Shown: positions 761-29,365 of the stretch, one piece after another | How the letters are laid out: every line of letters begins with the position of its first letter | Position numbering within the stretch: position 1 is the first letter of the stretch | Assembly (NCBI GenBank): GCA_024704765.1 | Contig: JAKMXF010000067.1 | Location: 1-29,365, forward strand | Length of the DNA: 29,365 nucleotides | Reading direction: 5' to 3' | Origin: Oopsacas minuta | Lineage: Eukaryota > Animalia > Porifera | Translations under genes and position numbers: made by a program | The notes under the pieces: model-generated | Databases searched by the model: none | Seen by the model: only the letters and a program-made list of their open reading frames with translations | Told to the model about the DNA's origin: nothing

Positions 761-1195
761 CTGCTTTGTTGCAGAAATAACAAGGTCTAGTAAAGGAACA
801 CCGTCTATTAATCCAACCGCTTGATAATACTCCTTCTACATTACTATATCTGAATCTAACACAGTCATTATCAGGACCTCCTGTGGGACTTGCATGACCA
901 AAGTTTGATTGGAAGTTCCTATAAGTACTGTTGCTACCATCTACCCATACAAATGCACTTACATTAGTACCAGCCTCTACATCTATATCATTTAGACCAA
1001 TATAACATGAAAAAGAATTATTGAAATCTATAATGGTATAGAACAATAAGCTATCTTCTTCTGCTGACTTGATTGTAGCAAGATGCCCTCCCCAGTTATT
1101 GCATTCTAATTCAGCATTTGTCCAATTTATTGGGCTCACTATGAAGTATCCAAATGTTGTATCATCATATGTTAGAGAAATATTAGGAGTTTGTG
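761..1195 (-). CDS. C-type lectin domain exon, type A (exon 2 of the left lectin receptor gene)
   Basis: 435-bp open phase 1-1 exon (ttaag|CACAAACT...AAAGCAG|gtaagt). CTLD motifs C..WGG.LATI, CYIGLND, FVWVDG, DCV, W.N..C, CYFC. Close paralog of 25989-26423, including flanking introns. Confidence 0.92.
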
Positions 1196-1832: not shown

Positions 1833-1902
1833 CTGTTAAGATGGAAGAGAGTAATGCACTTATCGTGAATAATAGAATGACTTGATAAAGTCTTGTTCCC
1901 AT
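1833..1902 (-). CDS. Signal-peptide first exon (MGTRLYQVILLFTISALLSSILT) of the left C-type lectin receptor gene
   Basis: ATG at 1902-1900, 23 codons with a basic N-terminus and hydrophobic core, then a phase-1 donor (ACAG|gtaact) that splices in frame to the 1195 acceptor, giving ...ILTA-QTPNIS. Confidence 0.75.
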
Positions 1903-10211: not shown

Positions 10212-10212
10212 N

Positions 10213-11253
10213 ATTAATATAGCTAGCATTGATATAATTACAGTCAAAATGTGGAGAATCTAATACAACTCTGTTTTCATCAAATGGTAGAATGTTTTTG
10301 ATTGGATTCTTTTGCAAATTTTCCTTTTTCGATGCATCGTCACTTTCTGGTACAACAGCGTTCTTAGAATCTTTATTTAATTTTTGAAATTCTACAGAAA
10401 ATAATGAATCATTTCCTATTCCAGATTCTACATACTGTTGATACATTGTAGGGAATTCTTTTATTGGTATGAATTTAGCTGTGAATTTGCTTTCTTCCTT
10501 TACAGAATTCATGGGTGTGTATTCTTCATAAGTCAGGACTTCCTTCATTTCTATATAACCTCTTTTCTCTTTTTTTTGTTACATTTTGGTGTGGAATATT
10601 TGACAAATTTGCATAACCTCGTTCATTAGGATTAGTGGGTGCGTCTAGAGTAGTTAACGATGTCTCATCTATTGTCATATACTCAGGGTTTGTATTTACT
10701 GAGAGATCTATGTACTCTTTAGATTGTGGATTGATCTCCGATAGAATAGTATAATCAGGATTACTTTCGTCACCTATTATATTGGATCGGGAGGGTTTAG
10801 GACACTGAGATAGTTTTCCCTTTGTTGGTCTTCTTTTCTTTATGTATAGAAAGATGAATATTGGAACTAGAATAATTGTAGTTACAATTATACATGTGAT
10901 CAATAATAGCATAATGATTATTATCGGTACCAGTGCACTGTTTGTTACTGATTCTGTTAGAGTTAGTATAGTAATATGTGCTGTGGTATATTCCACGCCA
11001 GAACTTGTAGAGCGAAACAATGAGAAAGTCTCGTTAAACTTAGAAGGCATTTCAGATATGCTATATGTAGATGTAATGATTATATTATTTACATTTGCAA
11101 TCATCCATACACATACAGGTAGGCTGCAGGTTAACGTAATATCCTTTGTTCCTTGAAGTATACTGATTACTTGTGGAGATGGAAATAATTCATTACTAAT
11201 ATCACTTGTGGTAAAGGTGTACCCTTCATAACTGATTGTTACTTCTACTGTAT
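10213..11253 (-). CDS. Large exon: last Ig-like domain, TM helix, Tyr-motif-rich tail and N-terminal part of a PTP-fold domain; +1 frameshift in the A8 run 10570-10577; truncated at N 10212
   Basis: Acceptor tttacag at 11254. TM LVPIIIIMLLLITCIIVTTIILVPIFIFLY followed by KKRR. Removing one A joins TKKEKRGYIEMKEV... to EFQKL...KNPIKNILPFDENRVVL...NYINASYIN (PTP motifs 1-4). Confidence 0.88.
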
Positions 11254-11305
11254 CTGTAAACATATGATAGATAATTTAATGATTTAATATATAATATCAA
11301 CAAAC

Positions 11306-11584
11306 CTTTGATTGCTAGCTGGAGACTTCCTAGAGAAGTTACTGGACTCATCCTATAAAACGAAGTTAAGGTATGCAAACCTGCTCCCACATTGGAGAAT
11401 ACTGCACTCAACACCACTGGATTCGGATACTCAATGCTGTAATTCTTATTGTCATCATATTTAACAGTGTCTGTTGTCCAAAGTATTATGTTATCCGAAC
11501 TACTTTTACTAGAATAGTAGAGCTTTGAAATAGTATCACTCACTGAATAATTAACTTGTATATTCTTTTCCAAGTTCGATACAA
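11306..11584 (-). CDS. Phase 1-1 ectodomain exon (F), probably a divergent Ig-like beta domain
   Basis: 279 bp, open, ag|TTGTATCG...ATCAAAG|gtttg. The fold assignment is an inference. Confidence 0.75.
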
Positions 11585-11641
11585 CTAGATAGAGACAAAT
11601 ACATGATATTCATTATATATTAAATATTGTTACCACCATAC

Positions 11642-11920
11642 CTGTTACTGAATCAATATTGATTTGTATGACGCAGACTTCTTCCCCATCCCAGTTTGTA
11701 ACATACAATTTATACAATCCAGCATTCTGTGACGTAATACCTGGAATTATTATAGTAACTGTTGGATCATTTCCATCTGGGAGTAACCATTTCCCCTCCA
11801 CATTCTTTGAAATTACAATGTCTATTACACCAACAGAAATGTTTAGAGTTTTCATGGTTGGATAAAGTGCTGAAAAACTCTCAATAGTATTGTCACCATA
11901 TCTGACAATTATTTGTGGTA
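11642..11920 (-). CDS. Ig-like exon (E type)
   Basis: 279 bp, open, phase 1-1. VPQI...P...GKW..PDG...I...NAGLY.LY..NW.G.E....QI.I, homologous to 23729-24022 and 27521-27811. Confidence 0.85.
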
Positions 11921-11978
11921 CTAGAAAAAAATATGTATGTTACAATATAGTGTAATGATATACAAGTCGTATCAGTAC

Positions 11979-12224
11979 CTATAAAACGGATGAGGTTTGT
12001 TGAAATTTCAGGCCCATTTCTCGAACAACTAGTACTATAGTTCTCTGCTGACGAAATATCAATCATACTGGCTATATTGATAGGATTGGGTAGAGTAGCA
12101 CTACCCTCCCCAATTGACCATTCTAATAGAGACAAACTACCGCCATCCATAGGATCACATAGTACTAATACATCCTGTCTGTCTAGTCCTACTATATAGT
12201 TGTATGTAGTTCCTGATATTGCAA
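11979..12224 (-). CDS. Ig-like exon (D type)
   Basis: 246 bp, open, phase 1-1. VA...TY.YIVG.D..D.L.LCDP...GSLS...W...NPINI...C, homologous to 23433-23663. Confidence 0.85.
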
Positions 12225-12285
12225 CTAGATGGGAGATTAGAATTATACATAGTTTAACTAATCAAAGAGTACCAAATATGCTGAC

Positions 12286-12582
12286 CTGTTGTTAAGGATG
12301 CATCATATAACCCAATCGTATAAGTTAATGAATTGGCTTGACACTGATAATAACCTTGTTTGGTAATATCAACTGCTAGCTAACTCAATCCTACTTCTGT
12401 ACTACTATATGTTGCTATAAGTACCTCACTATCTGATAAATCTGAGTTTTCTGAAAAAGTCCATACGATATCAGTACTCTCTTCTCTTCCACAGGCTAGC
12501 GTATGTGGGGTGAACAAAAAAGTGTTTTTTCTAATTGTTTCAAAGTCTAATCTTCCATTTGTAAGTTGTCCAAATCCTCCAA
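12286..12582 (-). pseudogene. Ig-like exon (C type) with in-frame TAG at 12382-12380
   Basis: 297-bp phase 1-1 exon reading GLS*LAVDITKQGYYQC where the paralogs read GLSWL / GWSWL (TGG>TAG). Confidence 0.85.
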
Positions 12583-12650
12583 CTAAACCATAATATTGAT
12601 TATTTCCTGAAACGACTGGCATAATATATATATGGCATAATATTCCTGAC

Positions 12651-12958
12651 CTGTTGTTACAGATGAAAGTCTTTTACATAGAAAAGCATTTAGCATTGTT
12701 CCACAGTCCACACTCCTCCAACTACCCTCTCCAGCTCTGATTATTTCAACACAATCTTCATTACTAAAAGATGGTTCACTCCCCGTCCAGTTTGTATGAC
12801 TATAAACTGAACCATCAGTCCAGATATATGTTCCCTCTACACTCCTATCATTCAATCCTATCCAGCAATTACTCACTGTATCAGGGATAATAGTGTATAA
12901 GTAATTATTCTCTCTCTCTGTAGTAATACTAGTCAAGTCACCACCCCATACAGCACAA
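12651..12958 (-). CDS. C-type lectin domain exon, type B (5' part lost in the N gap)
   Basis: CAVWGGDLTSI...CWIGLND...YIWTDG...EPS...DCVEI...W..VDC....AFLCK, with donor ACAG|gtcagg. Confidence 0.92.
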
Positions 12959-13903
12959 NNNNNNNNNNNNNNNNNNNNNNNNNNNNNNNNNNNNNNNNNN
13001 NNNNNNNNNNNNNNNNNNNNNNNNNNNNNNNNNNNNNNNNNNNNNNNNNNNNNNNNNNNNNNNNNNNNNNNNNNNNNNNNNNNNNNNNNNNNNNNNNNNN
13101 NNNNNNNNNNNNNNNNNNNNNNNNNNNNNNNNNNNNNNNNNNNNNNNNNNNNNNNNNNNNNNNNNNNNNNNNNNNNNNNNNNNNNNNNNNNNNNNNNNNN
13201 NNNNNNNNNNNNNNNNNNNNNNNNNNNNNNNNNNNNNNNNNNNNNNNNNNNNNNNNNNNNNNNNNNNNNNNNNNNNNNNNNNNNNNNNNNNNNNNNNNNN
13301 NNNNNNNNNNNNNNNNNNNNNNNNNNNNNNNNNNNNNNNNNNNNNNNNNNNNNNNNNNNNNNNNNNNNNNNNNNNNNNNNNNNNNNNNNNNNNNNNNNNN
13401 NNNNNNNNNNNNNNNNNNNNNNNNNNNNNNNNNNNNNNNNNNNNNNNNNNNNNNNNNNNNNNNNNNNNNNNNNNNNNNNNNNNNNNNNNNNNNNNNNNNN
13501 NNNNNNNNNNNNNNNNNNNNNNNNNNNNNNNNNNNNNNNNNNNNNNNNNNNNNNNNNNNNNNNNNNNNNNNNNNNNNNNNNNNNNNNNNNNNNNNNNNNN
13601 NNNNNNNNNNNNNNNNNNNNNNNNNNNNNNNNNNNNNNNNNNNNNNNNNNNNNNNNNNNNNNNNNNNNNNNNNNNNNNNNNNNNNNNNNNNNNNNNNNNN
13701 NNNNNNNNNNNNNNNNNNNNNNNNNNNNNNNNNNNNNNNNNNNNNNNNNNNNNNNNNNNNNNNNNNNNNNNNNNNNNNNNNNNNNNNNNNNNNNNNNNNN
13801 NNNNNNNNNNNNNNNNNNNNNNNNNNNNNNNNNNNNNNNNNNNNNNNNNNNNNNNNNNNNNNNNNNNNNNNNNNNNNNNNNNNNNNNNNNNNNNNNNNNN
13901 NNN
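12959..13903. other. Assembly gap (945 N)
   Basis: Run of N. The long X-filled ORFs over it are artefacts. Confidence 1.
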
Positions 13904-14238
13904 TGGTAAAAATTGTTCAATCCGATTGGAAATTTCAATCTGGGGTAACTCGCCTACGTAGAATTCAAATATCAAGTCAGAAATTATAGATTCTTAATAG
14001 GCTTTGAATTACCACATATTTTGATTATCAATAATTATCTAATAATTATTATAATTAACACCTTCAAAAAAGTGTAAATCGAAAATATTTTTTTGAAATT
14101 CTTGAAAAACATATGTTATTCTATACAAATTACTAGATAGCAGCTACGAATATAGACTACACAATATATAGGAGCGGGAAAGAGTATACAATTTATGACA
14201 ATATATTTGTGTGGTCGAATACTTTTGTCCCCTGACTG
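13904..14238 (-). mobile_element. Tc1-like element terminus running toward the gap
   Basis: Minus strand TA|CAGTCAGGGGACAAAAGTATTCGACCAC resembles Tc1 TIRs. The first ~140 bp are near-identical to 21486-21624, while the flanks outside the TA differ. Confidence 0.6.
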
Positions 14239-14896
14239 TAGATTATCATTCTTATGTATACTTATTTCGAGAAGATAGCAAGGTGTTCGGGCTTTACCAA
14301 TCCAGTCAGAGGCTCTGGGAACTGATTTCAGTTGGTCAGATTGATCTATACAATATACATGGCAAAAGCACTCTTCGACTGGTTGGAGGGGGATCCAGGA
14401 TACGAACAAGTCTGCTGAGTTAGAATTGAGAGTGTAGTATTTCGACAATAAGCAGGACCGACTTAACTATGCGACAAAGGGACAGCTGCCTTAGGACTCT
14501 TGTATAATTACGGGGCTCTCGTGAATTTAATTGCGTTTTAATAGTATAGATATTGTCCCAATGCTGGTCATTGCCCATTAGACGATCACTTTTAGTTTTG
14601 TAGAATATCAATAATTTATTATTACAGACCAGTAATCAAGTAATCAGTTATAAAGGAGTGAGCTCCAAATAGCACCGTTCCTATTTTGGAAAGCGAGACT
14701 TGGACACGCTCCATTTTTGGAGGAGCGCACACATTGGAGCGAGCTCCCATTAAGTACAATTTACAGAATTCAGTGAAATTTTGCATAAAATTCAGTTCTT
14801 GTGATAAAAGTGGATGATGGGATACTTTTTCATAATTTACTTATATATAATAATTGATTGAAATGGTTTGACAGATATTTAGCAATTTCCTGAATA

Positions 14897-15313
14897 CAGT
14901 ATTTATTCTAATAGTAGCCGGGACAATTATATACTTTAACCCCCTCCTTAGGGGGGGGTGCGAATGTTCGAATGAAGTGATTAGGTAGGTACTAGGTAGG
15001 TATTCATTTTATCCGCACTAAATAGAGTATTGCCATTAGTATTTACATTAACTTACTATTTGAAGAAATAAGTTTCGCTAGGGTACTGGGTAAACACCTT
15101 CCTATACTTGTACCCTCCATATCGTTGTTTATTTCCCTTGAGTATACGTCTTGTGAGTCTTGTGTGTGTAGTGTATGTATTACAGTCTAGTGTTTATAAT
15201 TCGACTTATTAACAATTCGAGGTAGGCGATTATTCGGGGTAGGCCGATTATTAATTTCAACCCCCAAAAAGGGGGGATTACTTGAATAGGGGCTACTATT
15301 CGAATAAATACAG
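14897..15313. mobile_element. Tc1/pogo-type MITE, 417 bp, TA TSD
   Basis: TA|CAGTATTTATTCTAATAGTAGCC versus reverse complement of the right end TA|CTGTATTTATTCGAATAGTAGCC (21/23). Confidence 0.8.
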
Positions 15314-15847
15314 TATACAATGGTTGAATTCAACCCTGATGCTGTATAATACAAATCTAATGAAAAGTAGCAAGATTGGAGCGCGGAGCGGGAAGGCTCT
15401 CCAAAAATGAGGAACATTTAATGTTCTGCAAGTAATGCCTGAAAATTTTCAACTAATACTGTATTCGTCAGGACTGCCAAAGCTAGTAATAAAATATGAT
15501 AGATGTATGTTAAAATTCCATCCAATTTCATAAAAATGGTTATGTGAATCCTGTAAAGGTAATATGTACGTAATATACGTATTAAGGTTAGGTATTTATA
15601 GTGAGTAGCGCATGCACTGAATATGAGTGAAGGGTAATTATGTAAAAATTATGTCTCAACAGCTGAAATAGCACGTAGGGGGTATTTAGAGTTAATCCGT
15701 CAAAGTTCTCCCACAATTATGTGAATAGCTTTCAAAACACACTATAACAACAAATAGGTTAGTAATTAGGGTTAATACATAAGAATTTATACATAAAAAG
15801 GCCTCCACAGGGTAAATATACATAAATAAATGCAATAGATTTGCTAC

Positions 15848-15875
15848 TCATATGTAGCGTATGCGCTACATATGA
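15848..15875. repeat. Perfect 12-bp-stem hairpin TCATATGTAGCG-TATG-CGCTACATATGA
   Basis: Direct reading of the sequence. Confidence 0.85.
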
Positions 15876-16047
15876 AATACATTGTTTTATTTAATTTGAC
15901 TATAATCTTGAATCGTTACAATTTACATACGAAACCTTCAATGTTATTAATCCAATCAGCTGTACATTCCCGAACAAACAGTAAGATATAACAAACTAAG
16001 AGTAAATACTGTAAATACAATACTCGGAAACAAATTGAAACAGAATA

Positions 16048-16231
16048 CAGTGAAACTTCATTTATACGAACACTAACGGACGGTCAAAAGTTGTCCGCCT
16101 TATCCAGAGTTTGTACTAACCGGAGTAAAACCAATTGAATAAGCATTATAGGGAACTGATTTTGTGTGATTATCTGTTCGTTTAATCTGGTAATTCATAG
16201 TAACCATGTTAGTATTAATGAAATTCCACTG
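16048..16231. mobile_element. Tc1/mariner-type MITE, 184 bp, TA TSD
   Basis: TA|CAGTGAAACTTCATTTATAC versus reverse complement of the right end TA|CAGTGGAATTTCATTAATAC. Confidence 0.75.
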
Positions 16232-17630
16232 TATTTCTCAAATCCAGCAAAATCTTTTGTCCTGATAAGCAAGTAGAATATGAAACTGATTCGCATACAA
16301 CCATAACTATCATTAAACATGTCTCATTGTCTATTTATAACACAAGAATATACAAATAGAATATATGTATAACAATTAAAACAAGAAACTTAATAGAAAA
16401 GTATTCACAAAATGCTAGAACATCACGATGTAAATTAGAGATGAATAGAACAATATTCATTTAGGAGAGAATAGCAAGTTGTATAACATGCCTATAAGAA
16501 GAATAGATAGTAGTAATATAGTAAGAAGAATTGGCACAAGGTGTTATAGATGGACTCGCGTTCTGTTGAAATTATTGTTACTTATCGAATATAATATGGA
16601 AACATTCAAACTAGTGACACAAGATAATACTAGATAATTGACCTGGTAAAATTGATGGCATTGGTGAACTTACAGGAGAAGTTTTATCCTGACGAATACG
16701 TGGTAAAAACTTTAGAGCTCAATCATAAATACTTTCCGGAATATTTAGTATCTTGGCTAGTACTTCCTAATTTGTCCTCAAACCACCTACCCATAAGGGC
16801 AAAGTACATTTCAGTAGACACATTATTAGTAAATTGATCTTATATCAATTATTGTTTACAACATGAGGTACACATGTAATGGTCATATTTGTAAATGTTT
16901 TTATGGTACTTGCAGCAAATGTAAACTTTACCCAAATCCTGTAAAGCAGATTTTGGCCGCAGAGAGGGAATACCCATGAGATATGTCATAAATTGTCACT
17001 ATATTGATAGGCATCAATCATGCTATAAAGTTTTAAAATAAATAGACTATTTCCGCTTATAGGTAATGGAATTTCTATAATATTTGCAATAAATGATATT
17101 TTATCTTCCTCGATTTCCCAGGAACTTTTCAGCTGACATTTTCGCCTGACTAAGAATGCAGAACTCGGCCTGTATACCAGCTAGATTCAAAAACTCAACC
17201 GTTTGGATAGATCTCTGTCTGTATGAAATTGTCTCGTGCGCTTTATCAATTTTGATAGCGGAATTTCAAACTTTTTATCCATAATGTTGTCGCGAATATT
17301 ACTGAAATTTGGAATCTACACTGTGGTCCAGATTCGAAATAAAAATTCAGAAACATCCGAACACAGGAACAAGTAAAGTACTGTAGTGTATGATTATTAC
17401 TATGTCTAACTATTCCCTTGAATATATAGGTATTAGAGACATAGATAATCAATTAGAAAAATATTCTAGGAATCAAGATTGAAAACTGAAACTGAGGAAC
17501 TAAATACGAATCTCAGAAATTTGATATATTTAGTTGTGTGAAATCATTAAAGTGTGAAAGTATATCGTCAAAACAATAAAATTTCTACAAACGATGACAA
17601 GAATGTATATGACAGTTAGAAAAGACTTAC

Positions 17631-18182
17631 CAAGGTAGGAACCATGTTCATTCTCTGTCTACGTAAGTCCTTAACAGCATTGAAGATATTAATAGATTTT
17701 CTTATGTTAAGATCTCTAATGGAATTCAACACTGTTATTATTATGCCAGTCTTAGAGATACCATCTTCACAATGTATGATTATAGAAACAGTATTTGAGT
17801 CTTGTTTCTGTTTCAGAATTTTGTTGAGAAGTACGATAACACATAACGAATCATGTACAGTGCCATCTTCATTCCATATTGGAGAAATACACTGAGTGAA
17901 TGAGTGTTCCTTTCCTGTTAAAGTATTCTTCAAACATATTTCCTGTTTCACAAATGCATTCGTTTCAGTAGAATTGATCAAAGTAGAAACAAAAGATTCA
18001 CAATTGAAAAGTTCATCCTTCTTAGGCCAGTAGCAGACATGATTAGATATTCCACTGAGTATCTTAGCTTTCTCCTTTCTCGTAGTCAGCATTATCACCA
18101 TACTAGCTTCTGTTTGATAGATCATTTGTAGGAAATCTAGATGTGTCTCTTTAGTTGGATTGATGGTAGCAATGAATTGATA
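17631..18182 (-). CDS. PTP-fold domain, C-terminal part, copy 1 (likely pseudophosphatase)
   Basis: YQFIATINP...DFLQMIYQ...VIML...CYWP...IIIHCEDGISKTG...NAVK.LRRQRMNMVPTL|gtaagt. It starts at the N join. The stop at 17616 is probably read-through into an intron. Confidence 0.88.
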
Positions 18183-18183
18183 N

Positions 18184-18747
18184 TATATTAATGATTATCA
18201 ATTCATTGCTACCATCAATCCAACTCAAGAGACACATCTAGATTTCCTACAAATGATCTATCAAACAGAAGCTAGTATGGTGATAATGCTAACTACAAGA
18301 AAGGAAAAAGCTAAGATACTCAGTGGGATATCTAATCGTGTTTGTTACTGGCCAAAAAAGGATAAACCTATCAATAGTGAACCTTTTGTATCTACTTTGA
18401 TCAATTCTACTGAAACGAATGCATTTGTGAAACAGGAAATCTCTTTGAAGAATACTTTAGCAGGGAAGGAACACTCATTTACTCAGTGTATTTCTCCACT
18501 ATGGAATGAAGATGGTACATTGAATGATGTATTATCTGCAATCGCCCTTCTGATTAGAATTATGAAACAGAAACAAGGCTCAAATAATGTTCCTATAATA
18601 ATACATTGTGAAGATGGTATCTCTAAGACTGGCATCATGATGACAGTGTTGAATTCTATTAAAGAACTTAACATGAGAAAATCTATTAACATCTTCAATG
18701 CTGTTAAGAACTTGCGTAGACAGAGAATGAACATGGTTCCTACCTTG
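18184..18747 (+). CDS. PTP-fold domain, C-terminal part, copy 2 (likely pseudophosphatase)
   Basis: YINDYQFIATINPTQETHLDFLQMIYQ...HCEDGISKTG...MVPTL|gtaagt (donor at 18748). The first 9 nt equal the last 9 nt of the PTP N-half ending at 10213. Confidence 0.88.
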
Positions 18748-21194
18748 GTAAGTATTATCTAACTGTCATATACATTCCTGTCCTCATTTGTAAGAAAATA
18801 TATTGTTTTTACGATATATTTCAATGATTTCATACTACTAAATATAGAGAATTACTGAAATTCGTTTTGGATTTAGTTTTCAATCCAAATTCCTTAAGTG
18901 TTTGCAATCCCATTTTGATCAGTATTTCTATACCTACCTGTCCTACGGAGAGTATTCCCTACAATACTAATACTTGTTCCAGTCTTCGGATGTTTTTGAA
19001 GTAATGACTTCAAAACTGCCCAGCATTCCAAAAATTCGATAATATTTTTATGTAACATTATGGGTAAACGTTTCTAATTTTCTAAAGCCAATTCCTCATA
19101 TTGTTTTTTGAGAAGCTGGCTGTCTATATTTCTCGAATTATGTTTGAAATATGTTCCAGATCTACTGTCTTACAAAGAATTTTTTACAGCATGCATCATT
19201 ATTTTGGTCAATTATAGTTGGGCAGTTGGGTTTACCTGGAAGCACAAATTCATCAATTTCGTAAGAAATTCTTTAATGTGTTTTAACAATCAAGTGAGAC
19301 AATTTTCATACAGGTTATTCAAAACGGTTGAGTTTTAGAATCTATCTGATATAGAGGCCGACTGGCAGAGTTTGGCATTCTTAGCCAGGTAAAATGGCGG
19401 CTGAAAAGTTCCTGAAAATCGAGGAAGACGAAACACCACTTTTTCACCGAAAAAATGGCCATTTATTGTAAATATTATACAAATTCCTGTACTATAAGCG
19501 TAAATAATCCATTCATTGAACTATATAGCATGGTTGATGCCTATCAATATAGTGGCAATTTATGGCGTAATCTCATGCCTCTGATGGCCAAAATCTGCTT
19601 TCCAGGTGGTTTGGGGGCAAATTGACATTTGTGTGCAAATAATATAAAAAATATTTACAGATAAGGCCATGAAATGTATACATCATGTTGTAAACATATG
19701 ACAGATAATACTTATGCAATAATTGATATAACTATTGGAGTGTACTTTGCCCTTATGGCTGGGTGGTTTGATGACAAAATTAGGGCTTGCTAGCCAAAAT
19801 GCTAGATATTTCGGAAAGTATTTATGATAGTGCTCTAAATTTTCCACCACGTATTAGTATGATAGAGAACTATCGAAAAATGTAATAATATCACTTTGGG
19901 AGTAAATTGGAATCTGTGGAAGTGCAGGGTAAACCGTACCCTTCAAGCTCACCAATGTTATCCCTTTCACCAGATCAATTATCTAGTATTATTTTGCATG
20001 ACTAGTTTGAATGTTTCCATATTATATTCGATTAGTAACTATAATTTCGACAGAACGTCAGTTCATCCATAACACCCTTATACCAATTCTTCATACTATA
20101 TTTCTATTATCTATTCCTCTTATAGGCATGTTATACAACTTGCTATTCTCTCCTAAATGAATATTGCTCTATTCATCTCTAATTTACATCGTGATGTTCT
20201 AACATTTTGTGAATACTTTTCTATTAAGTTTCTTGTTTTAATTGTTACACATATATTCTATTTGTATATTCTTGTGTTATAATAGTCAATGAAACATGCT
20301 TAATGATAGTTATGATTGTTTGCATGCGAATCAGTTTCATATTCTACTCGCGTATCAAAGCAAAACTGTCCAACTGTGGCAGACTGGGAGTGCAAGTCAG
20401 GATTATTTGTTTGTGTTATGATTAATCATATTCAATATGATTAATTGTGTAAAACTACATACCTAACATCTTTTGAATAAAATGCAATAAGTTACCAAGT
20501 GTGATTAATCATATGATAAATAATTTTGATAAGATTTAAAATGTCAAAATTGTAATCTAAATATTTTACTATACCTTACTAGCAGTTAAAACGAAATCTC
20601 TAGCATGATTTTGAAAAATATGCAAAGGTGTAAAATGTGATTATTCATATTATAATCTGTGAATATGGCACTTTCTGACTCGAAATTTCTCAACATCGGA
20701 CTCTACGCACCCAATTACTCCTGACAGCATGTTCAAACCTAATCTCTAGCTTGGGCGCTGGCGTTATTTCCGCCTCCTCTCAGCCCTTTTCCGGCTCCGA
20801 TTTTAGCTATAAATTGAAATAAAGTGTGACTGGTTGATTTATTTAGATTGTGCTTACAATATGTACTTACCATTATGAGGTTTTCATATGTTTTAAGCAT
20901 TTGTGTAGAAATGGATGCCCACAACGTCTGCGGAAACCTCATCCCAGAATGATTATATTTATTCAGATTATCAAATTGTAAATAGTTACAAATTTATGTA
21001 TTTATATCGGGGAGGATCCGAGTATTGAAATAACGAGAAAATATATAATTATCAACTTGATCTAAAATATATCACAATTATTTAGTTCCATGTGGGCATT
21101 GTTTTGCCAGTAATTGTTGGTAAGTGAGTCATCAGCTCAGGTGGTGTATCTGTTGATAAGTGTGTTACATATTGTAATAAATACTGTGTATTCA

Positions 21195-21229
21195 ACTCCA
21201 GGAGCCGTTGAATAAACTGCTCCTGGAGT
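21195..21229. repeat. GC-rich hairpin ACTCCAGGAGC-c-GTT-gaata-AAC-t-GCTCCTGGAGT
   Basis: 11-bp perfect stem plus a 3-bp inner stem. Confidence 0.8.
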
Positions 21230-21485
21230 ATTGATTAAGGAAAGTTAGTTTTAGAAAATCTCCTGAGCATACTAATATATGTTGGATGTGATACATTGGT
21301 CCAGGCTGAAACGGGGACCGGACCGCTGGGACTCAATACACCAATGATCCAAACTATCGCATCAAGACAGTTGTATCTGACAGGTCCTTTGGGTGGGCAA
21401 TTTGGCCTGGAGTTCATGCTCAAATGGCCTCCAAAAATCTATATTTTATCAAATACTCATCACTGAACACAATATTTAGGTAATA

Positions 21486-21624
21486 CAGTCAGGAGACAAA
21501 AGTATTCGAACACACAAATATATTGTAATAAATTGTATACTCTTTCCCGCTCCTATATATTGTGTAGTCTATATTCGTAGCTGCTATCTAGTAATTTGTA
21601 TAGAATAACATATGTTTTTCAAGA
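21486..21624 (+). mobile_element. Tc1-like element terminus, cut by the single-N join 21625
   Basis: TA|CAGTCAGGAGACAAAAGTATTCGAACAC. About 3 mismatches versus the reverse complement of 14100-14238. Confidence 0.6.
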
Positions 21625-21625
21625 N

Positions 21626-21904
21626 ATAGTATAACGGATATACAAACATACTTTAGATGCTATATTGGCCTGAATGATATACTTGTAGATGCTGGTACTG
21701 ATGGTAGTGCATTTGTGTGGGTAGATGGCAACACAAGTACATATAGGAACTTCGGTACATCAGGAGCGACATACCCTGCAGATACAGCTGACTATGATTG
21801 TGTTAGTTTCAGATATAAACCAGGAGGTGCTGGTCCTATATCAAATGGATGGATTAATCATTTTTGTAATATTCTAATAGATTGTCACTTCTGCACAAAA
21901 CCAG
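21626..21904 (+). CDS. C-type lectin exon, type A (A1; 5' part lost at the N join)
   Basis: RCYIGLND...FVWVDG...DCVSFRY...WIN..C....CHFCTKP G|gtaac. Confidence 0.9.
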
Positions 21905-21929
21905 GTAACAACATATTTGTACATTTTAT

Positions 21930-22463
21930 CAGGGGCGTAGATCCCGGGGGGATGCTCTATGTAATCATCCCCCTACTTTGAACTTTTGAGATACGTCTAC
22001 ATTATTTTTTCTCTCAAATCTTTTGAGTTTCAACAGATTATCCTCTTGTTATATTCAAATTTCACTGTTCTCGAGTTTTTTTCAAAGATATGAATCTGAG
22101 ATGTCATTCTCTATTCCTACTCATTGAAATATATGCTATAATCCGGATAAATGTATACTTGTAAATAATCTCTATCGTGCTTATTAATAATTCGCACTCA
22201 TAGAGTCTCTTCGAATAATTTATACTTTAATCTAGATATATTAAAACAATAGGTTCTAGGTTCTTTTCAGACTACCAAGTATAAAGTATACTATATATAC
22301 TATGGTCTATGTTCTCTGCTGTTTTTATTATTCTATAACTACCTTTTTGTCGTTTAGGAAGTTTAATGACTACGATTATGGCATATTCATATTTGTCATA
22401 TGTAGAAAAGTGCATTTTTAAATTCTCTATCTCCCCCCAGAAAATTACGGATCTACGCTTCTG
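21930..22463. mobile_element. hAT-type MITE in the A1-B1 intron, with 8-bp TSD CATTTTAT
   Basis: TIR CAGGGGCGTAGATCC / GGATCTACGCTTCTG (13/15). CATTTTAT at 21922-21929 and 22464-22471. Confidence 0.9.
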
Positions 22464-22613
22464 CATTTTATGCAAAATACAACTATAATATGACCTTTAT
22501 ACAACAATATATATGGTATAAGAATACATTGGGTACCTGAGAATGACCATAAATCATGTATCTAAAGTTTGTACATAGAATTGAAGCTATAAATATGTTT
22601 TGTTTACCTATAG

Positions 22614-23009
22614 CAACACCCAATGTATGTGATCTCATCTATGAAGGATCATGTTATCGAGTATTTGAAGTGAGTACTGGAATCAACTGGTTAGATGCTC
22701 AATCTAGTTGTGCTGTATGGGGTGGTGACTTGACTAGTATTGCCACACAGAGAGAGAATAACTACTTATACACTATTATAATGAGTAATAATTGTTGGAT
22801 AGGATTGAATGATAGGAGTGTAGAGGGAACATATACTTGGTCTGATGATACAACAGTTAGTTATGCAAACTGGACAAATCTCCCAACTACTGCTGGTAAT
22901 TGTATTGAGATTAACACAGATGGAGGTGTTAGTTGGGAAACTGTGAACTGTGAGGATAATCTAAACACTTTTGTATGCAAAAGAGCATCAACTAGTACTG
23001 TAACAATAG
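22614..23009 (+). CDS. C-type lectin exon, type B (B1)
   Basis: 396 bp, open, phase 1-1. Long-form CTLD CDLIY.GSCY...CAVWGG...CWIGLND...C.EI...WE..NC...FVCK. Confidence 0.93.
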
Positions 23010-23079
23010 GTTTGTAATTATATACTACGGATGTATATATATTCTTTGAATTTTTCATATTAATAATATCCACTCTCAG

Positions 23080-23376
23080 TTGATAGATTTGGAGAACTCA
23101 CCAACGAAAGATTTGACTTCCAACTGCTTAACTCAAATACTTTCTTGTTCACTTCACTTACATTAGCTTGTGGAGGAGTAGAGAGTAATGTTATCGTATG
23201 GAATTTTTCAGAAGACTCAGATCTATCAAACAGTGTAAGTATGATAGCAACGTATAGTAGTACAGAAACTGGATTAAGTTGGTTAGTAGTTAATATTACC
23301 AGACAAGGATATTATCAGTGTCAAACCAGTACATCATCTTATATAATTGGTTTGTATGATCCATCTTTAACAACAG
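23080..23376 (+). CDS. Ig-like exon (C1)
   Basis: 297 bp, open, phase 1-1. TLAC...IVW...L.VNITRQGYYQC. Confidence 0.9.
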
Positions 23377-23432
23377 GTGAGTAGATCGTTAATTGATATT
23401 TCTGAAATATTTTCCACTATCTTTCCCTCTAG

Positions 23433-23663
23433 TTGCGGTTGAAGAAGAAACATACATATATATAGTAGGAGTAGATAGTGAAGATATATTACTATTGTGT
23501 GATCCTACTGAGATTGGTAGCTTGAGTGCAATTATGTGGGATAGCGTGTATAATAACCCAATCAACATAAATAATGTGAGTGCTACATTACCAACAGAGT
23601 CTAGAGCATTCAGCTGTATGAGAGATACAGCTACTATCGTTATGATCTATCTTTCGGTGACAG
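23433..23663 (+). CDS. Ig-like exon (D1)
   Basis: 231 bp, open, phase 1-1. LLLCDP...MW...FSC. Confidence 0.87.
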
Positions 23664-23728
23664 GTATTCGATCAATATTTATTGTACAATTTACAAACTG
23701 ATTCATTCATCATTTTTCATATATATAG

Positions 23729-24022
23729 TTCCTGAAATATCCGTTTTCTATGGTCAATTCTTGGCTGAAAGCTTTTCATCAACTTATCCATCTACGAATA
23801 AGATTGCTATACCATTAGAATCAATAGATATTTCTATGTTCATCAACCTAATTGGAAAATGGAATATTCCAGGAGATATGAACAGTACTGACTCAACGAT
23901 AGATATTGCTGAATTTATGGAAGAAAACGCTGGATTATACACGTTCTATACTGATAACAACTGGAATCAAGAAGAAGCAATAGTTATGCAGATTAACATT
24001 ACATCTGCACCTCCTCGACCAG
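23729..24022 (+). CDS. Ig-like exon (E1)
   Basis: 294 bp, open, phase 1-1. GKWNIPG...I.EF.EENAGLY.FY. Confidence 0.87.
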
Positions 24023-24192
24023 GTATATACTTCTGAGGATAAATTATTATGTATTACGAAAGTAAGAAAACTCGTTGTGTATTCTTGAAGATCTTATGGA
24101 ATATATTCGGCCATGAGATGGATAACTATATAATATTTATAAGGAATCTGATAATAGAATAGTTTGAAAAGTAATTATTCTTGAATCTTTAG

Positions 24193-24636
24193 GTTTAATC
24201 CCAGATGAAGAATTTACATATGGTGGTACTTCTTTCGGATTAATCTCGAAGTCAACTGGATTAGACTGGTTAAGTGCTCAACTGAATTGTAATAACTGGG
24301 GTACTAGAGGAAATCTTGTTACTATAAAGTCAGCAGTAGAAGATAGCTTACTGTTATATAGTAGTACAGATATAAATACATACTTTGGATGTTGGATAGG
24401 TCTAAATGATATAGAAAATGATGCTGGTACTAATGCTAGTGCATTTGTTTGGGTAGATGGTAGTAGCAGTACTTATAGGAACTTCGATTCACAAATTGGA
24501 ATAAATCCCGGAGATGGAAATTCAGCATGGGACTGTGTTAGATTCAGATACAGGAATGGAGTAGGAGAATTATCAACCGATTGGATTAATCGAGGTTGTG
24601 GTGACATGAGAAATTGTTACTTCTGCAATCAACCAG
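24193..24636 (+). CDS. C-type lectin exon, type A (A2); missed by the ORF track
   Basis: 444 bp, open, phase 1-1. DWLSAQLNCNNWGTRGNLVTIKS...GCWIGLND...FVWVDG...WDCVRFRY...WINRGC...CYFC. Confidence 0.92.
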
Positions 24637-24692
24637 GTAAGTTATCATTACATGTAGTTGTTTATGAAAATAATGAATTTGTTTGATTCCAG

Positions 24693-25036
24693 CAAAACCC
24701 AGTGAATGTGATCTGATCTATAATGGATCTTGCTATCGATTGTTTGAAGTGAGTGATGGAATCAACTGGTTAAATGCTCAATCTACTTGTGCTGTATGGG
24801 GTGGTGACTTGACTAGTATTACTACAGAGAGAGAGAATAATTACTTATACACTATTATCCCTGATACAGTGAGTAATTGCTGGATAGGATTGAATGATAG
24901 AGATGGAGAGGGAACATATACCTGGACTGATGGTTCAGTATATAGTCATACAAACTGGACAGGGAGTGAACCATCTAATAGTAATGAAGATTGTGTTGAC
25001 ATAATAAGAGCTGGAGAGGGTAGTTGGGGGAATGTG
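24693..25036 (+). CDS. C-type lectin exon, type B (B2; 3' end lost in the gap)
   Basis: CDLIYNGSCY...CAVWGG...CWIGLND...EPSNSNEDCVDI. Confidence 0.92.
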
Positions 25037-25900
25037 NNNNNNNNNNNNNNNNNNNNNNNNNNNNNNNNNNNNNNNNNNNNNNNNNNNNNNNNNNNNNNNN
25101 NNNNNNNNNNNNNNNNNNNNNNNNNNNNNNNNNNNNNNNNNNNNNNNNNNNNNNNNNNNNNNNNNNNNNNNNNNNNNNNNNNNNNNNNNNNNNNNNNNNN
25201 NNNNNNNNNNNNNNNNNNNNNNNNNNNNNNNNNNNNNNNNNNNNNNNNNNNNNNNNNNNNNNNNNNNNNNNNNNNNNNNNNNNNNNNNNNNNNNNNNNNN
25301 NNNNNNNNNNNNNNNNNNNNNNNNNNNNNNNNNNNNNNNNNNNNNNNNNNNNNNNNNNNNNNNNNNNNNNNNNNNNNNNNNNNNNNNNNNNNNNNNNNNN
25401 NNNNNNNNNNNNNNNNNNNNNNNNNNNNNNNNNNNNNNNNNNNNNNNNNNNNNNNNNNNNNNNNNNNNNNNNNNNNNNNNNNNNNNNNNNNNNNNNNNNN
25501 NNNNNNNNNNNNNNNNNNNNNNNNNNNNNNNNNNNNNNNNNNNNNNNNNNNNNNNNNNNNNNNNNNNNNNNNNNNNNNNNNNNNNNNNNNNNNNNNNNNN
25601 NNNNNNNNNNNNNNNNNNNNNNNNNNNNNNNNNNNNNNNNNNNNNNNNNNNNNNNNNNNNNNNNNNNNNNNNNNNNNNNNNNNNNNNNNNNNNNNNNNNN
25701 NNNNNNNNNNNNNNNNNNNNNNNNNNNNNNNNNNNNNNNNNNNNNNNNNNNNNNNNNNNNNNNNNNNNNNNNNNNNNNNNNNNNNNNNNNNNNNNNNNNN
25801 NNNNNNNNNNNNNNNNNNNNNNNNNNNNNNNNNNNNNNNNNNNNNNNNNNNNNNNNNNNNNNNNNNNNNNNNNNNNNNNNNNNNNNNNNNNNNNNNNNNN
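25037..25900. other. Assembly gap (864 N)
   Basis: Run of N. Confidence 1.
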
Positions 25901-25988
25901 CGGTTCTGTTAAACAATTTAGTATAGAATTAGCTAGTCAATATAGCAACGTATAAATTCAATAACATGTTTTTTATCTCTTTCTTAAG

Positions 25989-26423
25989 CACAAACTCCTA
26001 ATATTTCTCTAACATATGATGATACAACATTTGGATACTTCATAGCGGGCCCAATAAATTGGACAAATGCCGAATTAGAATGCAATAACTGGGGAGGAAA
26101 TCTTGCTACAATTAAGTCAGCAAAGGAAGATAGCTTATTGTTCTATAGCATAACAGATATATATACTGCTTTTTCATGTTATATTGGTCTAAATGATATA
26201 GATGTAGAGGCTGGTACTGATACTAGTGAATTTGTATGGGTGGATGGTAGTAACAGTATTTATAGGAACTTCCAATCAAACTTTGGAAAAGAAAGCCCCT
26301 CAGGAGTTGCTGATTATGATTGTGTTAGATTCAGATATAGTAATGGACCAGGAATATTATCAACTGGTTGGCTTAATAGACGTTGTTCCGCTACTAGGTC
26401 TTGTTACTTCTGCAGTAAACCAG
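25989..26423 (+). CDS. C-type lectin exon, type A (A3)
   Basis: 435 bp, open, phase 1-1. Closest paralog of 761-1195. Confidence 0.92.
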
Positions 26424-26997
26424 GTAAGTGATTGTAGTAAAAAATAAGCCCAAAAACTTGAAATAAATATTACGGTGACCAGCATGTTTAGGTCTAAATC
26501 TTGGAGCATTGCACATTAAAATTCCTGGGCCTTTCCTAGACATTATATTAATTATTCTTTGAGAAGCATTTATATAAAAATATAAATGGATGTTCAATTT
26601 TGTAATAGAAATAGCGTGAGACCACATTTAACATTGCAAAGTTGCTACTGGTGTTGGTAACCAGTTTAAGAATTATGTTAATATTTCGGGAAAGATAAAG
26701 ACATAGCTATGTGATAGCAAGATTATATATTAGCTGCATGCAGGTTCTAAAAATGAGATATAATGCAATCGTACTTCAGGGGGGTTGATCTCTAATCATA
26801 TAATTTTAATATCCGAATATTCAAAATAATAATCTCGAGAATCCTGGACTGCTGTATTAAATCCTGGGTAATGGTCACACAAAAATATTACAGATAAGAA
26901 ACACTGAAAGAAATAGAATAAAATGTATTTTGTTCCTTTCAAATTACTAAACTGTTGAAAATACTTTTATTCAATTTTTAGTAACGTTATTCGATAG

Positions 26998-27405
26998 GTG
27001 ACTCACAAGGATGTGATCTGATTTATGATGGATTTTGCTATCGATTATTCGAAGTGAGTACTGCAATCAACTGGTTAGATGCGCAATCTAGTTGTGCTGT
27101 ATGGAGTGGTGACTTGACTAGTATTACTACAGAGAGAGAGAATAATTACTTATACACTATTATCCCTGATACAGTGAGTAATTGCTGGATAGGATTGAAT
27201 GATAGAGATAACAATGATGGAACGTACACGTGGATTGATGATTCAACATCTACTTTTACAAACTGGGGAGGTAGTACACCGAATGCTGGCAATGCTGATT
27301 GTGTTGACATAATAAGAACTGGGATAGGTAGTTGGGAAACTGTGGACTGTGAAACAACAATGATAAATGCTTTTCTATGCAAAAGACCTTCATCTATAAC
27401 AACAG
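26998..27405 (+). CDS. C-type lectin exon, type B (B3)
   Basis: 408 bp, open, phase 1-1, with CTLD motifs. Confidence 0.92.
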
Positions 27406-27520
27406 GTCAGTATAATAGGAATCCTACAATACAATATAAATAAGATCGTATTGGCCTCTATCTGCATAAATCACATAGTAGATTCCACAATACATATATT
27501 CATATTGTCCATTCGTTTAG

Positions 27521-27811
27521 TTCCAGAAATAACAATCCAAATTGATAACATCAGTGTTAGTAAATTCACGGATGTCTGTCCAACTATGAATGAGTTTGCT
27601 ATCCCATTATTAACACAAGATATTACTCTCTCTACTAATATTATTGGATACTGGACTGTTCTTGGAATTGCAAAACCTACTGGATCTACTACAGCAATTG
27701 AGAATTTCATGGAAGTAAATACTGGGCTATACCAATTCTATATTAACAACAGGGCTGGGGTTGATGTGTGTGCTATACAGGTTACTCTTATATCTTCACC
27801 AGCTATTACAG
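27521..27811 (+). CDS. Ig-like exon (E2), following B3 directly
   Basis: 291 bp, open, phase 1-1. VPEI...IG.W...IENF.E.NTGLY.FY. Confidence 0.87.
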
Positions 27812-27897
27812 GTAATAGTTACTTGATATATGTAATAATTTATTACTTATGGAAATCAAAATTTGATGATAAATATAATAATAATCTTGTTTGTTAG

Positions 27898-28329
27898 CAA
27901 TGAACCCAGAAGAAGAATTTATATTAGATGATACTACTTTTGGATATTTTAATATTTCCTCCGGGATCAACTGGATAACTGCACAACTCAATTGCATCAA
28001 TTGGGGAGGAAATCTTGCTACAATCAAGTCAGCAGAAGAAGATAGCTTACTGTTCTATAGTAGTACAGATATAAATACATACTTTTCATGTTGGATAGGT
28101 CTAAATGATATAGAAAATGATGCTGGCACTGATGCCAATGCATTTGTATGGGTAGATGGTAGTAGCAGTACTTATAGGAACTTTGGTACACTTGGACAAT
28201 CATATCCTGTAGCAACAGCCACTTCGGACTGTGTCAGAAACAGATATAAATCTACTGGTGAATTATCAACCGGTTGGGCAAATCAAGCATGCTCTGATAC
28301 TACAAATTGTTACTTCTGCAGTAAACAAG
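27898..28329 (+). CDS. C-type lectin exon, type A (A4)
   Basis: 432 bp, open, phase 1-1, with CTLD motifs. Confidence 0.92.
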
Positions 28330-28413
28330 GTTATTGATATATATCAAAAAGTCTTATTACTTATTAGTAACTATAACAGTATTTTCTGGTATTTCATGTT
28401 CAAAAATTTGTAG

Positions 28414-28818
28414 TTAACTCACAAGGATGTGATCTGATCTATAATGGATTTTGCTATCGAGTCTTCGAAGTGAGTGATGCTATCAACTGGTTAGATGCAC
28501 AATCTAGTTGTGCTATATGGGGTGGTGATTTGACCAGTATTACTACTGAGAGAGATAATACTTACTTATACACTATTATCCCTGATACAGTGAGTAATTG
28601 CTGGATAGGATTGAATGCTAGAGATAATAACGATGGAACATATATCTGGATTGATGATTTAGTATCTACTTATACTAATTGGCTAAGTAGCCCACCGAAT
28701 GCGGGCAATGAAGATTGTGTAGAAATAACAAGTGCTGGAGGAGGTAGTTGGGAAACCGTGGACTGTGAAACAACGATAAATGCTTTTCTATGTAAAAGAA
28801 ATTCATCTGTAGCTATAG
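28414..28818 (+). CDS. C-type lectin exon, type B (B4)
   Basis: 405 bp, open, phase 1-1, with CTLD motifs. Confidence 0.92.
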
Positions 28819-28880
28819 GTCAGTAAATTATTTATGCTATGAACGCTAGTAATTTGATATAGCATATGTATATGTTTTAG

Positions 28881-29177
28881 TTGGAGGATTTGGACAACTT
28901 ACTAATGGAAGATTAGACTTTGTAACAATTAGTGAAAACACATTTTTGTTCACCCCACATACATTAGCTTATGGAGGAGAAGAGAATATAGCCATTACAT
29001 GGCTATTTTCAGAGAATTCAGATCTATCATCTAGTCAACCAGAAACGCCAACCTATGAGAATATGGAAGCTGGATGGAGCTGGTTAGCAGTTGATATTAC
29101 CAAACAAGGTTACTATCAGTGCGAGGTCAATTCATTAACTTATACGATTGGATTGTATGATCCATCCTTAACAACAG
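28881..29177 (+). CDS. Ig-like exon (C2)
   Basis: 297 bp, open, phase 1-1. The first Ig Cys is replaced by Tyr (TLAYGG). Confidence 0.9.
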
Positions 29178-29245
29178 GTAAGTAGATCACTTTAATATAT
29201 TTTAATATATTTTACAGTCTTGATAACACCAACTTATCTATCTAG

Positions 29246-29257
29246 TTGCGGTTGAAG
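29246..29257 (+). CDS. Start of an Ig-like exon (D2), cut by adapter sequence
   Basis: ctag|TTGCGGTTGAAG, identical to the start of D1 at 23433. Confidence 0.7.
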
Positions 29258-29276
29258 AGATGTGTATAAGAGACAG
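29258..29276 (+). other. Tn5 mosaic end / Nextera junction adapter (library artefact)
   Basis: Exact AGATGTGTATAAGAGACAG. Homology with D1 stops here and the downstream 89 bp are unrelated. Confidence 0.97.
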
Positions 29277-29365
29277 ATCCAGCATGGTTCCATTTTCGAT
29301 CCCATTCGATGTATTTGCTTACTGTTTTTTATGTACACACTTGCGCCAGGTGATAACACTTTACT

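Follow-up and report, generated by a model that had tools for sequence, protein, structure and literature searches.

A candidate family of lectin/Ig receptors with a lone D2-type pseudophosphatase in the glass sponge Oopsacas minuta

What kind of receptor is encoded where exons for C-type lectin-like domains (CTLDs), immunoglobulin (Ig)-like modules and a protein tyrosine phosphatase (PTP) fold lie side by side? The question is raised by contig JAKMXF010000067.1 of the glass sponge Oopsacas minuta (assembly GCA_024704765.1, positions 1 to 29,365, hereafter the window), a stretch of AT-rich animal DNA of 29,365 bases with a GC content of ~0.33. A preliminary description had proposed that it holds an expanded family of glycan-recognition receptors, where lectin sensing, phosphotyrosine docking and a dead phosphatase are combined. 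The answer that we favor, with a probability of roughly 0.7, is that of glass-sponge type I receptors encoded in tandem arrays, made of lectin/Ig cassettes, a membrane span, a tail with tyrosine motifs and a lone pseudophosphatase domain of the D2 type. This is an essentially undescribed variant of the receptor-type PTP (RPTP) architecture, of which the window is a poor exemplar.

Seven contigs compose the window, namely A (1-7038), B (7040-10211), C (10213-12958), D (13904-18182), E (18184-21624), F (21626-25036) and G (25901-29365). One N marks each of the boundaries at 7039, 10212, 18183 and 21625, and the remaining two are longer gaps filled with N (12959-13903 and 25037-25900). Since the limits of the region that had been singled out are either contig ends (10213 and 21626) or adjoin the start of a Nextera adapter (29257), continuity was tested before any gene model was drawn. 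Four sequencing runs of one sample cover the region, and their contigs were accepted at 90% likeness; three of the runs behave as DNA, and the fourth (X4) was treated as RNA-like because it shows intron-skipping joints. The scaffold turned out to be badly mis-assembled, with its pieces out of order and inverted. At the N at 10212, a plus-strand exon with leucine-rich repeats (LRRs) and epidermal growth factor (EGF) modules and the minus-strand PTP exon are both cut in mid-exon, which is a false adjacency. At the N at 18183, the paralogous contigs D and E stand head to head as an imperfect palindrome with 597-nt arms of 90% identity, prolonged by further collinear arms at 96%, 84%, 83% and 98% identity that reach 14100/21624; this layout is a scaffolding artifact and no true gene arrangement. 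In the gap at 12959-13903, reads that run past 12958 carry the lectin exon onward, and no bridging record occurs among the four runs.

The order of the exons can be followed in contig C, whose gene copy (copy C) is encoded in the minus strand. Run X4 shows joints with CT..AC ends, or GT..AG introns in the minus strand, across 12583-12650, 12225-12285, 11921-11978, 11585-11641 and 11254-11305. These five introns of 52-68 nt separate a lectin exon of type B, the exons of modules 1, 2, 3 and 4, and a large exon (Table 1). All internal exons are in phase 1-1, and after splicing the lectin exon reads in a single frame through to the PTP domain, save for an apparent frameshift at 10570 and a TAG at 12380-12382. 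The former is an assembly error, an extra A in a run of As, where most contigs of all four runs have one A fewer. The in-frame TAG, in the exon of module 1, stands where the paralogues have Trp, and a contig of run X1 that matches the window letter for letter across 12365-12747 has it as well; as this run may be the very data behind the assembly, the TAG could be one allele or an error. A variant genetic code was considered for this TAG and for a TAA in another copy of the window, and was rejected, since each of them is one transition from a Trp or Gln codon and all the other exons read normally.

The second half of the PTP domain had been simply added to this chain. In the present layout of the scaffold, no such half lies downstream of copy C, the C-terminal halves sit upstream or in the other strand, and the contigs need to be re-ordered. 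Contigs of run X4 extend beyond 10213, and the 21 nt that they add read as the reverse complement of window positions 18193-18213. Moreover, the last 9 nt of contig C (minus strand) and the first 9 nt of contig E (plus strand) form an exact, in-frame overlap, and the joined translation reads '..NYINASYIN-DYQFIATINP..', with a gap-free alignment to ten homologues at the junction. Copy C is continued either by contig E (from 18184 onward) or by a paralogue that is identical over the join. Contig D begins 12 nt deeper in this exon; it contains 18 of the 21 extension letters, all of them identical, and therefore stays a possible partner of copy C. After the part in contig E there is a GTAAGT donor, and the conservation between D and E points to a 47-nt intron followed by a last exon (18795-18827) with ten more codons to the stop.

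Table 1. Receptor-related features of the window, with the favored chain first and the other copies below
Feature	Position	Strand	Evidence or remark
Copy C, lectin (CTLD type B) exon	12651..12958	-	Pfam Lectin_C E 9e-17; donor joined to 12582 in X4; 5' part lost in gap 12959-13903
Copy C, Ig-like module 1 exon, 297 nt, phase 1-1	12286..12582	-	joints at both ends; titin/NCAM2 profile matches; in-frame TAG
Copy C, Ig-like module 2 exon, 246 nt	11979..12224	-	joints; seven strands in AlphaFold2 (AF2) model
Copy C, Ig-like module 3 exon, 279 nt	11642..11920	-	joints; CEA profile match, E 1.4e-4
Copy C, module 4 exon, 279 nt, all-beta	11306..11584	-	joints
Copy C, Ig-like module 5, start of large exon	10937..11253	-	acceptor joint at 11253; titin Ig profile matches
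Copy C, membrane span of ~32 hydrophobic residues, then KKRR	10841..10936	-	from translation
Copy C, cytoplasmic tyrosine-motif tail: NPDY-TIL, YIDL-x7-YMTI, YANL, YTPM	10510..10840	-	translation
Copy C, first part of PTP domain (KNRY loop = KNIL), cut by N 10212	10213..10320	-	Y_phosphatase profile positions 1-37
PTP remainder, contig E	18184..18747	+	first 9 nt repeat the end of copy C; Pfam
PTP remainder of another paralogue, contig D	17631..18182	-	90% identical to E, same altered motifs
Copy A, signal-peptide exon	1833..1902	-	translation and GT donor read from the sequence
Copy A, lectin A (~756-1175) and start of lectin B (1 to ~140)	1..1175	-	TAA at 92-94 in lectin B
Contig F, first half: lectin A (cut at N), lectin B 22587-23009, Ig1 23080-23376, Ig2 ~23430-23663	21626..25036	+	
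Contig F, second half: Ig3 23729-24022, lectin A 24193-24636, lectin B ~24690-25036	21626..25036	+	last lectin B cut by gap
Contig G, first half: lectin A 25989-26423, lectin B ~27010-27405, Ig3-type ~27521-27811	25901..29257	+	
Contig G, second half: lectin A 27898-28329, lectin B 28414-28818, Ig1-type ~28881-29177, start of Ig2	25901..29257	+	

The cytoplasmic domain is that of a phosphatase by fold, as the preliminary description had it. Pfam detects Y_phosphatase at 10060-10548 (minus strand, profile positions 1-37, E 1e-6 for this N-terminal part), and at 17616-18125 (minus) and 18253-18762 (plus) for profile positions 61-222 (E 6.5e-26 for the C-terminal part), in all cases above the cut-off. 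Among solved structures, the domain comes closest to RPTPsigma, RPTPalpha and LAR, with E-values down to 7e-30, and PTPRN2 is also among the matches. When compared with RPTPsigma, RPTPalpha and LAR, KNRY is changed to KNIL, WPD to WNED, HCSAGVGRTG to HCEDGISKTG, and MVQT to MVPT, and these changes recur in the paralogues. The residues by which classical active RPTPs are recognized (the Arg of HC(X5)R, the general acid of WPD, the phosphotyrosine loop KNRY and the Gln of the Q-loop) are thus all wanting. Contigs D and E differ in their PTP part by a dS (synonymous divergence) of 0.26 with a dN/dS ratio (nonsynonymous to synonymous) of 0.27, a value that, together with the altered motifs, indicates a conserved pseudoenzyme. 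The dead phosphatase of the earlier reading is thereby supported, with every catalytic motif altered.

In a quick maximum-likelihood tree of 94 domains, 19 lone domains of the family and 15 D2 domains form one clade (Shimodaira-Hasegawa-like approximate likelihood ratio test, SH-aLRT, 100), with no D1 domain inside. Of the 19 lone domains, all except one have Lys in place of the P-loop Arg; this Lys is also typical of the D2 domains in the nearest tandem PTPs, and the D1 domains of these PTPs are canonical. The ~200 residues that separate the PTP domain from the membrane span contain the tyrosine motifs and no second PTP domain. The PTP domain is a lone membrane-distal (D2-type) pseudophosphatase, predicted from its sequence to be inactive, and, as part of the explanation that we favor, it would likely descend from the D2 domain of the sponge's own tandem RPTPs after loss of the catalytic residues.

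On the outer side of the membrane, Pfam finds Lectin_C in the lectin exons of types A and B with E-values from 5e-17 to 5e-8 (34-63 bits against a cut-off of 22.6), and the best solved relatives are the CTLDs of DEC-205, PLA2R, FcRY and the mannose receptor. No Pfam matches to ricin-type or FNII domains were obtained, and the signal-peptide exon of copy A leads straight into lectin A. For the Ig-like modules, profiles were built from the copies of the window and of related loci, and compared with PDB profiles. Module 1 matches titin and NCAM2 (E 2e-8 to 6e-5, with Pfam Ig only below threshold), module 3 matches CEA, and module 5 matches titin Ig profiles (E 1e-8 to 1e-3); modules 2-5 give no Pfam match even at E 5. 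The AF2 model of module 2 (predicted local distance difference test, pLDDT, 68) is a seven-strand sandwich, and its best folds are CD3gamma, CAR, CD147 and CD4, with template-modeling (TM) scores of 0.55-0.59 and weak E-values (>0.03). The model of module 4 (pLDDT 54) is too weak for a fold search, and profile-profile comparisons gave no similarity of module 4 to modules 1 and 5, or of module 3 to module 1. Ig identity is supported for modules 1, 3 and 5, weakly for module 2, and unsupported for module 4. The CTLD-Ig-TM (transmembrane)-Tyr-PTP chain previously read by splicing 10213-12958 stands as to its five GT..AG joints and its single frame, but module 4 cannot be counted as Ig, module 2 only weakly so, and the first Ig module carries the TAG. 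In three public ORFs of the family (open reading frames; P0007, P0011 and P0018), an FN3-like module takes the place of Ig-like module 5 beside the membrane (fn3 E 4e-5 in P0018).

The tail of copy C contains, at 10670-10717, a pair of tyrosines with the YxxL/I-x6-8-YxxL/I spacing of immunoreceptor tyrosine-based activation motifs (ITAMs). Among paralogues that are less than 70% identical, YIxL, YxTI(D/E)E and YxxM are conserved, YxxM being the best kept, and NPxY appears in the tail of some copies only. The tyrosine pair itself is retained in most paralogues, with a spacing of 5-8 and a variable +3 residue. Concerning its surroundings, O. minuta has a homologue of TULA/UBASH3, a regulator of ITAM/Syk signaling in vertebrates (PMC10253181).

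Does such a chain exist beyond this scaffold? In a full HMMER scan, 32 proteins fell below 1e-30; the top one is from O. minuta (KAI6661278.1, 70% identity over the PTP part), and most matches are ORFs of ~530 aa (amino acids) equal to the terminal exon, that is, Ig5, membrane span, tail and PTP. A family member is also present in the transcriptome of Vazella pourtalesii, and the closest attributable relatives are all hexactinellid, from either O. minuta or V. pourtalesii. The public loci of the family show 68-93% identity to the window and none is identical, so the window represents another locus of the family. In two ENA contigs of 502 kb (L002) and 553 kb (L004), two to four lectin ORFs, Ig ORFs and an ORF with the membrane span and the PTP domain follow each other in tandem in one strand, and L004 has three of these lectin/Ig/TM-PTP genes in tandem; in L002, inspection by eye revealed no signal-peptide exon ahead of the first lectin exon. 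HiFi-type contigs with members of the family are available in ENA under ERZ20067936 and ERZ25766962. The idea of an expanded multi-copy receptor family is well sustained by these arrays, and the contiguous loci, together with the spliced joints of copy C, link the lectin exons to the TM-PTP exon. A further locus (L003, 7381-12277 in ENA ERZ20067936) encodes a tandem-PTP paralogue with a canonical D1 domain, preceded by exons of the Ig1, Ig3, module-4 and Ig5 types; the 10 kb upstream contain no called Lectin_C ORF. A local hidden Markov model of the CTLD found no lectin domain in the 151 closest PTP proteins, which are mostly single-exon ORF calls, so this result has little weight. In the literature, we found no description of lectin-bearing RPTPs in sponges or choanoflagellates, nor of 'PTPRLec' or its sea urchin case.

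Several observations weigh against the architecture that we propose. No single read or contig runs from a signal peptide to the PTP domain in any copy of the window; the X4 splice chain leads from the lectin exon to the TM-PTP exon. Since the contigs that yield the junctions are short and needed only 90% likeness to be accepted, some of the junctions may belong to paralogues, and the 21-nt extension fits contigs D and E alike, which does not allow them to be separated as partners of copy C. Copies C and A carry nonsense codons (TAG and TAA, respectively). Module 4 has no PDB or Pfam match and no recognized fold. The strict ITAM spacing is a feature of copy C and not of most paralogues, so that, of the tyrosine motifs put forward for phosphotyrosine docking, their conservation among paralogues stands but a general ITAM spacing does not. 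The EPN/QPD plus WND site for sugar and Ca is absent from every lectin domain of the window: at Ca site 2, type B has EPS, TPN, PPN or PTT, plus WET or WRS, and type A has none of the motifs. As the canonical sugar/Ca residues are lacking, sugar binding is not predicted, and glycan recognition, a central part of the preliminary description, is left unsupported by these sequences. The PTP domain retains its catalytic Cys, and residual or unusual activity is possible. Novelty is a separate matter: no paper on sponge lectin-RPTPs was found, but a public model of O. minuta already pairs both domains. A word-index search retrieved P0176 (685 aa, 'Receptor-type tyrosine-protein phosphatase alpha'), with Lectin_C and Y_phosphatase annotated; this one model combines a signal peptide with a single lectin domain, a single Ig-like module, a membrane span, tyrosine motifs and a D2-like PTP domain, and so speaks for the architecture.

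How much of the window is alive? It is possible, although we lean away from it, that all its copies are dead, a mixture of pseudogene debris and assembly chimeras whose working relatives are found elsewhere. The TAG of copy C reproduced exactly by the X1 contig, the TAA at 92-94 in copy A, the Ig1-type exon of contig G with its first Cys replaced by Tyr, and the seven contigs with their false joins, palindromic D/E junction and adapter would all fit with this idea. Yet RNA-like contigs span copy C and show its exons spliced, the remaining exons in contigs F, G, D and E are all open, the PTP exon shows a dN/dS of 0.27, and, if X1 is the assembly's own data, the stop could be an allele or an error. 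Moreover, such decay bears on single copies and not on the family. In the explanation that we favor, too, copies C and A are probably pseudogenes or null alleles, as expected under birth-and-death evolution.

Two other explanations touch the architecture itself, and we consider both improbable. One of them keeps the PTP domain as an enzyme with an unusual substrate or mechanism, such as a phosphoinositide phosphatase like PTPRQ with its WPE loop; the catalytic Cys and the HC..G..(K)TG frame present in all copies, an acidic residue at the position of the WPD loop and the purifying selection are in its favor, whereas the change of the P-loop Arg to Lys, the acidic residues inside the P-loop, the loss of the KNRY Tyr and of the Q-loop Gln, and the position of the domain within a clade of D2 domains argue for a pseudoenzyme. 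The least probable alternative assigns the exons to two neighboring genes, one for a lectin that is secreted or anchored and the other for a short receptor-like PTP, as the public annotation of O. minuta does: at L001 (8093-13315, GCA_024704765.1), a 448-aa Lectin_C model ends 11 bp before a 530-aa PTP model named 'RPTP epsilon-like'. However, a chain of spliced joints connects the lectin exon with the TM/PTP exon, with all exons in phase 1-1 and in frame; the 530-aa model has no signal peptide and, when aligned, passes over the membrane span; P0176 holds both domains in one model; and the same exon order is repeated in L002 and L004. The public annotation has split one lectin-PTP gene at L001. 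At this locus, the Ig2-type exon also shows an in-frame stop in its translation.

With a family of single-chain lectin/Ig/PTP receptors as our preferred reading, the window as a whole likely contains, as part of the same explanation, pieces of no fewer than four paralogous genes (A; C; D or E; F and/or G). All the exons of contigs F and G are open, with AG/GT sites compatible with phase 1, as read from the sequence. The paralogues previously placed at 1-1902 and 21626-29257 do show, in F and G, A/B lectin pairs interleaved with Ig modules, but the only signal peptide visible among the receptor copies is the plausible one of copy A, and none is visible in 21626-29257. The first 144 nt of contig G match, at 96% identity, the stretch of copy A just after its signal-peptide exon, made of an intron and the beginning of the next exon. 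Because of this resemblance, a gene boundary may lie inside the gap at 25037-25900, making F and G two separate genes.

Other elements share the window with these receptors. The exon that abuts the PTP exon at 10212 is part of an unrelated receptor-like gene (8845-10211, plus strand), an ORF with a signal peptide, LRRs (LRR_8 E 2e-14) and Ca-binding EGF modules that is cut mid-EGF by the N. A 239-aa ORF at 5444-6163 (minus strand) has NHL repeats (E 5e-16), as a part of a six-bladed propeller protein. At 3500-4198 (plus strand), the first 75 residues of another ORF are Ig-like (Ig_2 E 8e-4, below cut-off) and the rest looks by eye like the tail of a retroelement reverse transcriptase; the ORF may represent an Ig exon into which a mobile element has inserted. 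A repeat occupies 13904-14240 and, in inverted orientation and with 98% identity, 21484-21624; three of the four runs give it a word depth of ~1e5, whereas neighboring sequence has a few hundred, and 13904-14240 is thus ~1000 times deeper than its surroundings. The repeat has no Pfam or Rfam match, and Rfam gives no match anywhere in the window. A Nextera transposase adapter lies inside the assembly at 29258-29276, and the final 90 bases of the window are probably chimeric. In run X2, this adapter also turns up as a loose end at 14003.

Regarding known systems, D2 domains are mostly inactive, and those of tandem RPTPs (LAR/RPTPsigma, RPTPalpha/epsilon, CD45, and the sponge P0016, P0017 and P0020) have the same fold and fall in the same clade as the lone domains described here. 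The D2 domains of the sponge tandem RPTPs share an HCxDGIGKTG loop, and the tandem-PTP locus L003 shares the Ig1, Ig3, module-4 and Ig5 exon types. Unlike tandem RPTPs, the family has no D1 domain, its tyrosine tail lies between the membrane and the lone D2-like domain, and it carries lectins outside. P0176, P0001 and P0003 (the last two 'RPTP epsilon-like' and 'RyPTPR4a') belong to the same family, under names assigned automatically by similarity, and the PTP part of P0001 shows 70% identity; P0176 differs in having one lectin and one Ig-like module, and P0001 and P0003 are truncated and lack the lectin part. DEC-205 and PLA2R resemble the family as its best lectin sequence matches and by their multiple CTLDs per chain, whereas the mannose-receptor family has ricin and FNII domains, which are not seen in the window copies, and no PTP. 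In sea urchin, a phosphatase survey of 2006 reportedly included lectin-bearing receptor PTPs ('PTPRLec') with a C-type lectin ectodomain; they are not known to have an ITAM-like tail or a lone D2 domain.

The tail motifs recall those of Draper/CED-1/MEGF10, type I proteins with NPxY and an ITAM-like YxxL pair, but the ectodomain of the latter is made of EGF repeats and they have no PTP domain; the likeness is drawn from motifs. NKG2D-DAP10 couples a lectin-fold ectodomain to YxxM tyrosine signaling. Similarly, Dectin-1 has a lectin-fold ectodomain, and its (hem)ITAM signaling is controlled by the receptor PTPs CD45 and CD148 (PMC10815196). Both Dectin-1/CLEC2 and NKG2D-DAP10 are type II and rely on a separate phosphatase or adaptor, whereas here a single type I chain bears a dead-looking phosphatase. 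Another comparison is offered by IA-2/PTPRN and PTPRN2, type I membrane proteins with one PTP-fold domain and a P-loop Asp at the Ala position; IA-2 differs by its conserved P-loop Arg and its SEA-like luminal domain (PMC10815196), lacks lectin/Ig modules and a tyrosine tail, and falls outside the D2 clade. Among non-bilaterians, the clustered and expanded Alr genes of Hydractinia encode divergent Ig-like receptors with tails of the ITAM or inhibitory ITIM type (PMC9546547), although without any lectin or PTP domain.

How could such a chain work? In the explanation that we favor, phase-1 exon cassettes make up the ectodomain, with paired C-type-lectin-like domains of two kinds and Ig-like beta-sandwich modules, and the large last-but-one exon supplies the final Ig-like module, the membrane span, the tyrosine-motif tail and the single PTP-fold domain. 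From the way in which comparable motifs and D2 domains act in other animals, we infer a signaling scheme. A ligand, glycan or other, on the lectin-like/Ig ectodomain would cluster the receptors; tyrosines of the tail could then be phosphorylated by Src-type kinases, and SH2 or PTB proteins, such as a Syk-like kinase or a PI3K p85-like adaptor, would dock on the phosphotyrosines. The D2-like domain would serve as a non-catalytic docking or regulatory module, and may pair with active D1-containing paralogues that share ectodomain modules. Taken one step further, glass sponges would have a paired-receptor system built on shared cassettes, with active tandem PTPs as the inhibitory arm, chains with a tyrosine tail and a dead D2 domain as the activating arm, and the D2 domains coupling both arms. 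We regard this last scenario as unlikely; if true, it would be a non-bilaterian counterpart of the activating/inhibitory pairs of vertebrate immune receptors, for microbe sensing or self/non-self discrimination.

In practical terms, the public gene models of Oopsacas split or truncate the genes of this family, and the scaffold of the window mis-joins them. The family also offers a natural case of a D2 domain without a D1 partner, which bears on the old question of the function of D2 domains. More generally, no sponge receptor family described so far links a diversified ectodomain to phosphotyrosine docking. A clustered and fast-evolving family where lectin/Ig modules, ITAM-like and YxxM motifs and a pseudophosphatase would be held in a single chain makes these receptors candidates for the recognition of microbes, phagocytosis and tissue compatibility in sponges.

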